From Polymyxa betae A26-41 (lineage: Eukaryota > Protista > Endomyxa: Phytomyxea): 34,497 bases of DNA. Both the position numbers and the translations under genes were made by a program. Each line of letters opens with the position of its first letter. Position 1 is the first letter of the stretch. Location: NCBI GenBank assembly GCA_003693705.1, contig RBZT01000371.1, forward strand, positions 1 through 34,497. The letters are read 5' to 3'. Shown piece by piece: positions 8,716 through 14,004 of the stretch. The notes below the pieces were generated by a model. The model was given only the letters and a program-made list of their open reading frames with translations. It did no database searches and was not told the DNA's origin.

Positions 8716-9370
8716 TTATTCATTTGGGAACGGTGGCATGCAATCACCAAGCGATTTGAACGTAGGATCGAGATTGATTTCAAGGACTACCCCATCTAGA
8801 GTTGACTTAGATCCTTGTTCCAAAATCTTTTTCGCATCAGCTTCGCTTGAGAAAGTGACCGTTGCCTTTCTCATACTAGCACCATGCCTTACAAACAGAT
8901 GCGTATTGATTATGGAGCCGAATTGAGAGAAGTACCGAGTAAGTTGCTCTTCGGTCGTCGACGGAGATAAATTTTGGATGAACAGACGAGTCCCATGACC
9001 TTCTATAGGGAACCCGAAACGATGTTTTGTCCATTTTCGCGATAGATCACTCCAGACGTGTATCGGCGTTCCATCCAAAAGATATTTCTCCCTTCGACCG
9101 ATTTTGAAAGCAACTCCGACTGATTCGTAAAGAAAAAACTGAAGTAATCAACAAAGGCGACAGATTCTTGTCCGATCATACCTTGATTTGAACTTGAGGA
9201 CTCCGCCTACCGACCTCGTCATAACTAAAACAGACCGTCCTAACGGGCCCACAGGGGCTGAACAAAGCAACAATTTGCTGTGCCCTAGCCGTGCTTGGAA
9301 CAGGGTAGATTGTGACCACTTTGGTTAAAAGCTCAACTGATAATCGATTAAATGCCGAGCAGGTCGGCAT
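8716..9370 (-). CDS. RRM-domain protein (~203 aa; intron 9139-9181)
   Basis: RLFIQNLSPSTTEEQLTRYFSQFGSI is an RNP2/helix signature. A 43-nt GT-AG intron joins the upstream divergent RRM-like exon in frame. Confidence 0.8.
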
Positions 9371-9543
9371 GGATGTGGTCAGGTCAGGTTGAGATGGTTT
9401 GATGTGGCGCAGCCTTCTTCAAATACAGTCTGCCATCTTGCTCGTTAGCCCTGTCGATTTCGCAGGAGACCCAACCATCAAGCATCATCGAGGCCAACCA
9501 GTAGCTGAAATCCACAGGAGAACACAGGAATTTTATTTTTTTA

Positions 9544-9853
9544 GGCTATTATGGCATTCTACTTCATGAAGACGACATGGAGCCTTGTCACTCGCTGCCT
9601 TCTTGACCTAAAGTATGCTCATCCATGTGACCGAGGAACATGCAGAGAGGCCTCCTGAGTCTGCTTGAAGAGAACACCAAGGATATTCCAATTTGAAGGC
9701 AGTCTCTCTTGATCATACATTAAGGGCAGAGGTCTCCCTCAGCCTGGCCTCTTACAGCCGCAGCGTGACTTGAAGAACCGAAGGTGAATCGGTCGAACGG
9801 GTGCTTCGAGCCCTTGTGATTGTAATGATCAGTCTGTAGCCGAATTCGGTTAG
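9544..9853 (+). other. Candidate structured RNA element or small ncRNA (~300 nt), unassigned
   Basis: No ORF. Helices 9544-49/9836-41, 9595-602/9695-702, 9710-16/9825-31, 9721-27/9810-16, 9728-34/9746-52 and 9777-81/9789-93, with G-U pairs on the + strand. Confidence 0.35.
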
Positions 9854-10031
9854 TGTGTGTTGTGATGCTTGAACTTTTATAAGCCCAAGTCTATTTTATC
9901 CAATAATCAGTCTTGTGCCTTGTTTGTGTTCTGTTCCTGTGCCTTTAATATTTGCGCGACTGCGCAGATATTTTCTGCGAATTTCACGACGCAGATCTGT
10001 CCTTCTTGTAATTTCATTTCTATCATCTTGA

Positions 10032-11195
10032 ATGGCTGCTATAGCTCATCCTCCTCAAACTGGCATTCTCCGAACGAAATCGGAATCCGATGCCGGTGTC
10101 GCTGGCCGCGATATTCATGGCCGTCGAAATGCGATCTGCTTCCCGACTTCACCAAGGCGACTTGAACGTCGGAATGCCATTTGCGAGGCGTTGGATTTGG
10201 TGTCAGTTCATTGCCTTTTGGAATTTCGATTAGGACGTATGCCGTTATGGATATCGGAAGGCGTCGAGGAGACCCCAGTAGGATTTGACGGAATAGCGTT
10301 TGATGCATTCTCGTGGTCGGAAGACGACATTTGCAGATGCTTGAAATGGATTCTCTGCGATTCGGATCTGTTTGGGAAATATGATTTTGATGAAGGTCTT
10401 GTTACATCGTTTATCAATCAAGTTCGAATGGGTTATGCTAAGTATTCCAATCCCTATCACTGCTTTCGACATGCATTCGATGTGACCCAATTCTGCTATG
10501 TGCTATTATCTGTTGGCAAAGCCAGCTGTATTTTAACTCAAGACGAGGCTCTTGGTTTGATTATTGCAGCTATCTGTCATGATCTTGAGCATCCAGGCAC
10601 CGATTTTGCCTTTCAATCTGCTATTGGATCTCATCTTTCCAACACATATCTCGGATACGAATCACCACTCGAAGCCCATCATCTCACCTGCGCTTTAATG
10701 ATTCTTAACGATCCTGGCTCCAATATCTTCTGCCATCTTCCTGAAGAACGTCGTCGTCTTATATTGGATATTGTCAGGGAGTGTATTCTAGCTACTGATA
10801 TGGCTCGTCATAACGATATTCTTGCCGACTGGCGTAGCCGATCTCCAGATGAACGTGGGTCGCTGAATATGCTGCTGCTTCGTCTGCTGATTAAGATGGC
10901 CGATATCTCCAACGTCTGCAGGCCATGGCCAATCAGCGTTCAATGGTCGCAGAAGCTAATCGATGAGCTCATGCGAGTTCATGATTCGGTGATCGGTCTG
11001 GGCCACGTCCCAAACAGTTTCCTCAGCAGCATCGCTTCTGAACCCGACAGGGTCGTCAGGTCGTTCGCACTGAACTGTGCCCGTCCTTTGCTAGAAACAA
11101 TTATCGAGGTCCTGCCGTTAACCAGGCCACTGCAATCTGTCCTTGATTCCAACGCTGCTCAATGGAATCATGGTAATCGCGATCCGCCTGAATGA
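10032..11195 (+). CDS. Class I cyclic-nucleotide phosphodiesterase-like protein (PDEase_I/HD domain), intronless and atypical
   Basis: NPYHCFRHAFDV, AICHDLEHPG, LEAHH, ILATDMARH, IKMADISNVCRP. The metal-ligand His/His/Asp/Asp residues are present. Confidence 0.92.
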   Translation: MAAIAHPPQTGILRTKSESDAGVAGRDIHGRRNAICFPTSPRRLERRNAICEALDLVSVHCLLEFRLGRMPLWISEGVEETPVGFDGIAFDAFSWSEDDICRCLKWILCDSDLFGKYDFDEGLVTSFINQVRMGYAKYSNPYHCFRHAFDVTQFCYVLLSVGKASCILTQDEALGLIIAAICHDLEHPGTDFAFQSAIGSHLSNTYLGYESPLEAHHLTCALMILNDPGSNIFCHLPEERRRLILDIVRECILATDMARHNDILADWRSRSPDERGSLNMLLLRLLIKMADISNVCRPWPISVQWSQKLIDELMRVHDSVIGLGHVPNSFLSSIASEPDRVVRSFALNCARPLLETIIEVLPLTRPLQSVLDSNAAQWNHGNRDPPE

Positions 11196-11690: not shown

Positions 11691-14004
11691 TTAACAAGTT
11701 TCAGAATCATCATTATGTTCATCTCCTTCGTTGTGTAACTCTCGATCATCATCTTCATGTTCATCATCATCCTCTTCATGCAATAAATCAGTAGTGTGAT
11801 GTCCATTAGCTCCATCATCTTCATGACAATTAATAATCATATCTTCTTCATGTTCTGGTGGTCTTGTATATCGCTTATGAACTCCTTTACTTTTAATAAC
11901 ATTCATAACTCCAAATACATCCGCTGTTCTCTTTGCTGCTTTATTGGCTGTCATACCAAACACATCTTCAATGATCTGATCAAGTTCCTTTTTAGCAATC
12001 CGTTTCTCCACTGATCGAATTCCATCACGAATTTGCTGTCCTGTAATCTTGCCATCATTGGACTGCTCAGCAGCGTTATCCAGCACCGCTTTGATCTCGC
12101 CATAATAAGCGATGATTTCTGACAGATACTGATCTCGAAGACATTCAGCAAATGGACCTTGATCGCCATCACGATTCTCTTCGAATAGACGTTCATAGGC
12201 GACCTGACCCTGATTACAGTTCTGCTTCTCTCTTTCTAATGATTTCACCAATAGTCTCATATTCGGCTTCGGTTTACCCGGGAACATCTTCAGCAGAATC
12301 TTGACGAATGTTCTCCTATCAATATATCCAGATCTACTGGAATCTCGAGTTGCACACACTTCTAATAGATGCTGCACAACCCGGCTTTGATCATCATGAA
12401 CATCCTCACTAACTTCACCTCGTAGTACCATATCAAATAATCGAATATCAGCATCATATTCATAGGCTTTCAATGCTTCAATTAAGCTGTATCCCCATTC
12501 TTGAAGGACGCTTGCAGCTCCGTATTTAGTAGATAGATACGTGTAGACATAATCAGCAAGTTTCGAGCGAATACCACGTTGCTTATCAAATGATCTCTTC
12601 ATAAGCCAGACATCACGAACAGTTAATTCAGCCTGACGTTTAGTAAGGACACGACGTCGTACCTTGCCTGAGACACGAAGGTATCTTGGAATGGATTCTG
12701 CTGTACCTAATCCTTCAATATATTCGGTGGCGTCTTCGACATAAGACTGGCGAGTACGACGTTGTGTCTCTGCTGCATCAGCAGCAAGCATCTCTTCACG
12801 TTCAAGCAGGCGAATCTTCATGTTCCGGGTTGCCAATGTTTGTACGAGAACGTCAACGGCTTGGACTGTCGACATCTGAGACACTTCTAGATGTGCTCGT
12901 CGTGCAATCTTCTGCCAATCTGGACGTGGTGTTAGAGATCGGGTATCTGGTTCAGGTGGAAGTGATAGAGGGGCGTGTCGATGATTTCCATGAAATGATG
13001 GACGGCGTGGGATTGATGAACGTGATCGTGGCAGCTGCATTATTGACATTCGCCTCTACACCAATATTCAATAAGGAAGATCTGAAGCGATTTCACGAAA
13101 ATATGAACATGAACATGAAAGAGAAATTTGTATGAGAAATGCTACTTACAGGTCGAGCTATTGATTGCTCTTCAATCTGTTTCTGTAGGGCGACCTTCGC
13201 TTCCATTGTCTGATTCAGAAGCTCCAGTGATTCAACGTTCTCCTTGCGTTGATGGGCGTACTGGACCTTGAGCTGATCCAGCTCCCGCTGTAGTACACTA
13301 TTCATAACGCGCGTATCAGCAGCTCGATTGAGCTCAATGTGAAGGTTCTCGACCGATTGTGATGCTGATTGCAATAGAGCTTTGAGTTTTGCAATAGATT
13401 CAGTTTGTTGGCGGATCTGTGTATCACGACCACGAATTTGAATGTTGGCATGAGCAAGACGTTCCTGCAGCGATTCTATCTGTGATGTCAGATCATGGTT
13501 GATGCCGTTTAGCTTCTGGATCTGAGCTCGAAGATCAGTTATGGTGATGTTATTGTTCTTGTTATCAAGTGATATAACAGCCATCATCTCATAATAAAGC
13601 AGATGTGATTCACCATCAAATGCACCTCGCTCAAATATATCTGCAAGACGTTGCAGCACGTGTTCGAACTGACCGGCATAGGTGCCAATCTTTCGAAGTA
13701 GCTGAAGGGATGGATTTAAAACTTCACGATGTGGCCGATCTTGACCGAGTTCACGATCTAGATTCATAATTGATATCAAGTCGAATTCGGCTTCGAGATG
13801 ATAGGCTCGGTAATAGCGAGCAGTCTTGGGAACGTCATCGCGAACGGCAACGATTTGATCGAAGTTGATGCGAGCATGGTTTGGCACAATCGTGACCTTC
13901 TTTGCCTCAGGTTCTAATTCCAGCTTGGAAGGTTCGTTAAAATACGGAGCTGGTTGAAAACGTTGTTTCCGACGCCATCTGTAGTAGGGGATTGGCTCTC
14001 CCAT
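11691..14004 (-). CDS. Translin-associated factor X-interacting protein 1 (TSNAXIP1)-like coiled-coil, cilia-associated protein (intron ~13056-13149)
   Basis: N-terminal coiled coil, then PRYLRVSGKVRRRVLTKRQAE, YEYDADIRLFDMVLRGEVSEDV, an EF-hand-like DSSRSGYID and LFEENRDGDQGPFAECLRDQ, matching my recollection of the family. Confidence 0.7.

Follow-up and report, generated by a model that had tools for sequence, protein, structure and literature searches.

A plasmodiophorid phosphodiesterase with tandem RRNAIC sites: a probable pseudosubstrate tether to a cyclic-nucleotide-dependent kinase

Why should a cyclic nucleotide phosphodiesterase (PDE) carry, twice over, a peptide resembling the inhibitor site of the cyclic-AMP-dependent protein kinase (PKA)? 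The question is raised by a gene of Polymyxa betae A26-41, a plasmodiophorid. These unculturable, soil-borne plant parasites pass through zoospore and plasmodium transitions that are poorly understood. The window analyzed here comprises positions 1 to 34,497 of contig RBZT01000371.1 (assembly GCA_003693705.1), 34,497 nucleotides in all. Within it, a single open frame on the plus strand encodes 387 amino acids plus a stop codon, and the hexapeptide RRNAIC appears in it twice, at aa 31-36 (nt 10122-10139) and at aa 46-51 (nt 10167-10184). The reading that we favor, and to which we give a probability of roughly 60%, is that these peptides are pseudosubstrate sites that would tether the PDE to a cyclic-nucleotide-dependent kinase, forming a feedback module like that of mammalian PDE7A1. 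The features on which the argument draws are as follows.

10029-10031, plus strand: in-frame TGA directly 5' of the start codon (TGAATG), making Met1 the most upstream start possible in the exon
10032-11195, plus strand: intronless PDE gene (open reading frame; Pfam PDEase_I, E 7.5e-54; Spongospora subterranea orthologue with 59% identity over 99% coverage)
10068-10088, plus strand: LR[TS][KR]SES block, aa 13-19, with L13, R14, S17, E18, and S19 invariant in three genera
10107-10139, plus strand: copy 1, RD[IL]HG-RRNAIC, aa 26-36, with core R31 R32 N33 A34 I35 C36 and 10 of 11 residues identical in three genera
10167-10184, plus strand: copy 2, RRNAIC, aa 46-51, kept in Spongospora and absent from the orthologue (L006) of a GC-rich relative
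10185-10235, plus strand: segment EAL..SV.CL.EFRLG following copy 2, aa 52-68, conserved between this PDE and that of Spongospora
10455-11132, plus strand: PDEase_I catalytic domain (Pfam), aa 142-367, with invariant metal-site residues
11055-11057, plus strand: codon for Val342 at the position of the purine-recognizing Gln of class I PDEs, from alignment to PDE2A and among orthologues

Is the repeat anything other than an accident of composition? Given the amino acid content of the PDE itself, a protein of such length should contain RRNAIC about 1.8e-5 times, and a pair of copies at a distance of 15 residues is therefore not due to chance. The initial annotation had reported the two copies at these residues and had noted that their DNA differs only at synonymous third positions; the open reading frame and the comparison of the two 18-nt stretches (three differing positions, every one a synonymous third position) agree with it. 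The repeat is a real, conserved, and nonrandom feature of the PDE. It lies in an N-terminal region of 84 residues that stands outside the catalytic fold, since alignments to structures in the PDB begin at aa 85.

Conservation was examined in four sequences: the PDE, its orthologue in Spongospora (P0002), that of the GC-rich relative (L006/P0003), and a paralogue of the latter, P0047. The top named homologue is that of Spongospora subterranea, with 99% coverage and an identity of 59% by BLASTP and 61% in the alignments. Both RRNAIC copies are retained in it, separated by a spacer that is altered in sequence as well as in length. The second homologue, P0003, was obtained from Logan run SRR20204233 and belongs to an organism of high GC content. 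There, a prokaryote-style gene call began too late, just after the motif; the frame is open upstream, and starting from the ATG at L006:5857 yields an N terminus with LRSRSES and RDLHGRRNAIC. This orthologue has one RRNAIC copy and lacks both copy 2 and the segment that follows it. Across the three genera, R26, D27, H29, G30 through C36, L13, R14, and S17 through S19 are invariant. In the copy 1 block, 5 of 11 codons differ synonymously between the PDE and the GC-rich relative and 1 of 11 nonsynonymously, and 4 of the 7 codons of LR[TS][KR]SES differ synonymously, even though identity between the two proteins is only 22% over the N terminus, compared with 54% over the rest. Inside the RRNAIC motif itself, codon differences are synonymous only, both between copies and across genera. 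Metagenomes, scanned with the alignment and with a degenerate nucleotide pattern built on the CHDLEHPGTDFAFQ block, gave no further orthologues.

The fourth sequence, P0047 (L041 3001-4038), is from Logan run SRR20204235, numbered next to the run of the GC-rich relative. In the P. betae genome it best matches the PDE gene, so it is taken as a lineage-specific paralogue. P0047 has a single RRRNAIA (within RRRNAIAVEL), and the stretch behind it is similar to what follows copy 2. Its catalytic domain is degenerate: ATN replaces ATD, 14 residues are deleted after HDLDHP, and the IDELMRV block is lost. It may be a pseudo-PDE retained for its N terminus. In all four sequences, RRNAI is the sole invariant run of the N-terminal extension; it is present in two copies in Spongospora and in one each in L006 and P0047, while the flanks diverge. 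The earlier proposal of selection acting on the peptide is thus borne out by these comparisons, which support peptide-level selection on the RRNAIC motifs.

Are these residues translated at all? If translation began at Met70, the first 69 residues would be untranslated and the motifs would lie in a 5' untranslated region (UTR), and the gene call on the GC-rich relative, beginning just after the motif, would seem to favor such a start. The frame is open from the ATG at 10032, however, and the TGA at 10029-10031 abuts that ATG, so the frame cannot be extended upstream without an intron. The Spongospora protein begins with the same MAA and is 55% identical over aa 1-84, about equal to the remainder of the protein. 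The upstream peptide is conserved as protein, motif differences across genera are synonymous, and Met70 itself is not conserved among the PDE, Spongospora, and the GC-rich relative. The initial annotation had named a downstream start, as well as absence of the motifs from close orthologues, as refuting its reading; the former is on this comparison close to refuted, and the motifs are present in the orthologues.

What, then, could the motif be for? The most telling comparison is within the same genome, a 27-Mb assembly of 1001 contigs with about 43% GC. RRNAIC was sought across it with a degenerate pattern, the reversed pattern serving as a control; there were eight matches to one for the control, and both PDE sites were recovered. 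Six of the eight encode Arg-Arg: two in the PDE, three in short frames (about the level expected by chance), and one in a gene resembling a PKA regulatory (R) subunit. This last match, at C728:36029, adjoins a cluster of cyclic-nucleotide-binding (CNB) domains. The region C728:32500-36800 (L030 2766-6773) holds three tandem R-like units, in each of which an inhibitor-site exon stands directly before a CNB domain.

C728, R-like unit 1: inhibitor-site exon KARRRTAVSAEPV
C728, R-like unit 2: inhibitor-site exon MRRRRTAVSSEPV
C728, R-like unit 3: inhibitor-site exon PTGRRNAICAEPTSG

The sites read RRRTAVSAEP, RRRTAVSSEP, and, in unit 3, GRRNAICAEP. Unit 3 is homologous to the first CNB domain (CNB-A) of unit 2, with 37% and 46% identity (E 2e-17 and 9e-14), and its exons, judged by eye, join in frame through GT..AG introns of about 46 nt from an ATG at L030:5903. 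It looks like a mini-R: its N terminus is short, its single CNB domain is divergent, and the phosphate-binding motif of that domain reads FGDNAL..KRAES. The array may be three genes or one multiunit gene. Pfam detects no RIIa domain in exon 1 of the canonical R gene.

Seven residues, GRRNAIC, are identical between copy 1 of the PDE and the unit 3 inhibitor site. Because this peptide occupies the inhibitor-site position of an R-like protein, it would be a native R-type pseudosubstrate site of the organism, and a pseudosubstrate site is therefore the best reading of the PDE motif as well. The PDE copies also have, twice, the residues that define the pseudosubstrates of R subunits and of the heat-stable PKA inhibitor PKI: basic residues at P-3 and P-2, a nonphosphorylatable P0, and a hydrophobic P+1 (R-R-N-A-I). 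That RRNAIC is a pseudosubstrate site for a cyclic-nucleotide-dependent kinase of the AGC group is thus well supported, chiefly by the within-genome comparison.

Kinases that such a site could address are also present. At C505:11868-14060 (L036) lies a single-chain CNB-kinase in which a CNB domain, the sequence FAKRNAISAEK (a KRNAISAE pseudosubstrate), two further CNB domains with the cAMP-type motif PRAA[ST], and a complete kinase domain ending in WDADF follow one another; the PRAA[ST]-type CNB domains and the kinase domain share one open frame of 542 aa (L036:379-2004). Two genes resembling the PKA catalytic (C) subunit, at C535 and C883, were found by means of a DFGFAK pattern; they carry DFGFAK and TLCGTPEY and end in FADF and FEAF. 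A search with Pfam Pkinase_C (PF00433) returned only AGC kinases with a hydrophobic motif and no PKA-C. Beside these stands P0055, a PKA-C-like protein of 687 aa that is 74% identical to the C883 exon. In its C-tail, about 500 extra residues separate SSDDT from NFDKYPDS; they could be an inserted element or an intron of a GC-rich genome that has been read through.

An alternative is that RRNAIC is a short linear motif peculiar to this lineage that serves some other partner or purpose, such as autoregulation, oligomerization, or localization of the PDE, and that its likeness to a pseudosubstrate is coincidental. In favor of this, the three further matches in short, unremarkable frames indicate that the hexamer can arise by chance in six-frame space, and the conserved block includes the upstream RD.HG and the Cys, which pseudosubstrate function does not require. 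Against this stand the exact identity of GRRNAIC with an R-like inhibitor-site position in the same genome and the fit of every position to the R/PKI consensus, as does the predicted docking described below, in canonical register and with controls near zero. We regard such another role as possible but unlikely.

Can the pseudosubstrate peptide be placed in a kinase cleft? A complex of PDE aa 1-80 with the kinase catalytic domain of the C505 protein (aa 215-542 of L036:379-2004) was predicted, with a mark that 51 of 78 complexes of known structure reach, as do 2 of 108 mismatched pairs. The pair scored 0.64 (runs of 0.63, 0.72, and 0.64), compared with 0.02 for the best control, with a pLDDT for the partner of 42-46, a pass that possibly reflects the predictor's memory of PKA-PKI structures. 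At least 30% of contacts are shared by the three runs. Copy 1 is placed inside the cleft of the kinase, in canonical register, and the contacts predicted with confidence are these.

R31 of the PDE: kinase F320, near E318 (PKA E127 region)
R32: kinase K359 and E361 (PKA E170)
A34: kinase D357 and F378 (PKA D166 and F187)
I35: kinase T392 and P393 of the P+1 loop, T388-D394
C36: kinase C390, in TLC390GTP (PKA Cys199)

In the best run, residues 57-66 of the PDE are also predicted to contact the large lobe of the kinase; they fall in the aa 52-68 segment, for which AlphaFold2 (AF2) predicts a short helix with low confidence. As for the PKA-C representatives, P0071 was set aside as foreign, and P0052, P0055, and P0164 were set aside for faulty ends.

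Put together, these elements suggest the following course of events. The PDE would present an N-terminal extension with one or two R-subunit-type sites, having Arg-Arg at P-3/P-2, Ala at the phospho-acceptor position, and Ile at P+1. In the same cell, an AGC kinase controlled by cyclic nucleotides, be it PKA-C, the single-chain CNB-kinase, or both, would take up these sites in its substrate cleft. The PDE would thereby be tethered to the active kinase and would plug its active site for as long as it stayed bound. The tether would also put cyclic nucleotide hydrolysis right beside the kinase, giving a negative-feedback terminator of the PDE7A1 kind. Of the parts of this scheme, we infer the binding, the inhibition, the partner kinase, and the nucleotide hydrolyzed.

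Several observations weigh against this scheme. (i) The GC-rich orthologue has a single copy, so the tandem arrangement is not essential. (ii) The determinants of high affinity in PKI, Arg at P-6 and Phe at P-11, are not conserved, and affinity may therefore be modest. The initial annotation had pointed to an Arg at P-6 and a Phe at P-12 of copy 2; both are present (Arg43 and Phe37), but neither is kept in Spongospora, and its label "PKI-type" does not hold, in that only the core RRxAI, common to R subunits and PKI, is conserved. (iii) Since introns interrupt the PKA-C genes, the CNB-kinase took the place of PKA-C as the modeled partner, and the prediction cannot choose between the two. The pass shows likeness and may reflect memory of the much-solved PKA-PKI and PKA-R structures. 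(iv) An AF2 model of the whole PDE, built with three sequences, was uninformative on the accessibility of the motifs (mean pLDDT of 43.8). (v) For unit 3, the one with the RRNAICAEP exon, a cross-species homologue search with the frame of its CNB exon came back blank, a result of little weight owing to the length window of the search. (vi) Two raw RNA runs contained no reads of this organism; the sequencing runs that do contain the stretch behave as the source of the DNA.

Might the motif bring a kinase to the PDE rather than the reverse? The LR[TS][KR]SES block lies 12 to 14 residues upstream of copy 1 and is invariant, and Ser17, with Arg at -3, is a possible phosphosite for a basophilic kinase. 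In animal PDEs, N-terminal regulatory phosphorylation is established, with sites for PKA or the related PKG in several. RRNAIC could accordingly dock PKA or PKG transiently so that the serines of this block are phosphorylated and the PDE is regulated, with negligible net inhibition of the kinase; the poor conservation of the PKI-type determinants would fit as well. A pseudosubstrate bound in the cleft, however, blocks the very site that a substrate serine must occupy, making phosphorylation in cis by the docked kinase sterically awkward. The degenerate paralogue P0047 retains RRNAI and not the SES block, and the equivalent repeats of PDE7A1 inhibit. This account is an unlikely one.

P0047 bears on one further possibility, namely that the PDE lineage serves Rhizaria as a substitute for PKI, a PDE-fold scaffold that captures active kinases of the PKA/PKG type stoichiometrically and independently of cyclic nucleotides. 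Pointing this way are the retention of RRNAI in P0047 while its catalytic domain decays and the modeled position of the P+2 Cys next to Cys390 of the kinase. Type II R subunits also have Cys at P+2, and a disulfide between Cys97 of RII and Cys199 of C was reportedly described in the literature of the 1980s. If the modeled proximity of Cys36 and Cys390 is real, it would allow a complex locked by a redox-sensitive disulfide. The redox link suggested in the initial annotation, which had likened the P+2 Cys to that of the RII inhibitor site, survives as a low-probability case through this proximity and the RII-C disulfide. The Cys is present in all five orthologue copies, but P0047 has Ala at that position. 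The substitution for PKI as a whole we consider improbable, and the tether of the PDE7A1 kind is still preferred.

How good a phosphodiesterase would the tether carry? The Pfam PDEase_I match (PF00233) reaches 183 bits, far above the cutoff of 24.8, over aa 142-367. The metal-site residues H143, H147, H183, D184, H187, E214, H217, T255, D256, and D291 align to those of PDE2A and are invariant in the orthologues. The otherwise invariant Gln of the class I pocket, in contrast, is replaced by Val342, while the clamp Phe345 is kept; in the PDE2A alignment, "rvvrsF" of the PDE stands opposite "elqisF". V341, V342, and F345 are invariant in three orthologues. With metal ligands and clamp Phe intact, the Val may entail an unusual substrate or low affinity. 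By domain and metal site, the protein thus classes as a class I PDE, though one lacking the pocket Gln, with uncertain activity and, because of Val342, uncertain substrate specificity. The name "cAMP-PKA silencer" given in the initial annotation is therefore too specific, all the more so as either PKA-C or the single-chain CNB-kinase might be its partner. Its idea of a host-directed factor also finds no support, since the N terminus has no hydrophobic, signal-peptide-like stretch (the highest 10-residue Kyte-Doolittle mean in the first 40 residues is 0.36), and a host-secreted effector was rejected on that ground.

To which family does the catalytic domain belong? In a phmmer search of the PDB, the best matches were PDE2A (3e-35) and PDE9A (4e-33). 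PDE7A (3e-27), whose chains align over aa 123-317 only, ranked below these and also below kinetoplastid PDEB1, PDE1B, and PDE5, and orthology to PDE7 was rejected for this reason. Database matches outside the plasmodiophorids are mostly PDE9-like. Since the domain is nearer to PDE2 and PDE9 than to PDE7, the pseudosubstrate architecture looks convergent with that of PDE7A1, and the combination of a PDE with tandem pseudosubstrates most likely arose apart from the animals, as far as these matches indicate.

The neighborhood of the gene has features of its own. Positions 9699-9855, about 180 nt upstream of the PDE start, match exactly a 157-nt contig from a root metatranscriptome, and the same run has nothing over the PDE open reading frame. 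This stretch could be a small RNA or the UTR or first exon of the minus-strand RNA recognition motif (RRM) gene listed below; a search of 9300-10100 against Rfam gave no match. The flanking genes are these.

8716-9370, minus strand: RRM-domain gene (Pfam RRM_1, E 2.7e-14) with at least two exons
11691-14004, minus strand: two open reading frames, one without a Pfam family and the other with weak coiled-coil-type matches under the curated cutoffs

What would the tether mean if it is real? Should the binding hold, the fusion of a PKA-type pseudosubstrate to a PDE would have arisen on two or more occasions, among animals (PDE7A1) and among Rhizaria, and on different catalytic lineages. This would speak for a PDE that also plugs a kinase as a general way of ending cAMP or cGMP signals, reaching beyond mammals. 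It would also provide a first handle on cyclic nucleotide signaling in plasmodiophorids, for which nothing on PDE or PKA was found in the literature searched, whose coverage is incomplete. Along with the PDE, the unusual set of regulators in this genome (a tandem R-like array with differing inhibitor sites, a single-chain CNB-kinase, and two PKA-C genes) makes up a testable module. In the same literature, pseudosubstrate inhibitors of PKA-C other than R subunits and PKI were confined to animals (PDE7A1, ARHGAP36, and Smoothened), and the earlier statement that no such PDE had been described outside animals stands, with no report found there.

How does the PDE compare with the known ways of blocking PKA? 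It shares with R subunits, including the R-like gene of its own genome, the core GRRNAIC, with Arg-Arg at P-3/P-2, Ala at P0, and Ile at P+1, as in the type I site RRxAI-S-AE. It differs in that the motif is duplicated, lacks the "AEP" continuation, and has no CNB domain downstream, so release by cyclic nucleotide in the manner of an R subunit is impossible. PKI has the same RRNAI core, but the PDE, at 387 aa, is not a small, free-standing protein and is not homologous to it; the P-6 Arg is confined to copy 2 of the P. betae protein, and neither an aromatic residue nor a helix is conserved on the N-terminal side of the site. ARHGAP36 and Smoothened are animal proteins, neither R subunits nor PKI, that block PKA-C through an embedded pseudosubstrate (PMC5059767, PMC13186710). 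Their host proteins are unrelated to the one described here, none being a PDE and all being metazoan.

The closest parallel is mammalian PDE7A1, also a class I PDE with two RRxAI pseudosubstrate copies in its N-terminal regulatory region, and the analogy drawn in the initial annotation holds at this level of architecture. The motif of PDE7A1 is RRGAI, compared with RRNAIC here. The catalytic domains differ, that of the P. betae protein being nearer to PDE2A and PDE9A and having Val in place of the pocket Gln, as does the lineage, here Rhizaria. According to two papers citing Han et al. 2006 (PMC6143667, PMC12174393), the N terminus of PDE7A1 is a tandemly repeated PKA pseudosubstrate that binds and inhibits C. 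Judged from its sequence, the P. betae PDE is apparently a convergent variant of this PDE7A1 principle in a different eukaryotic supergroup.

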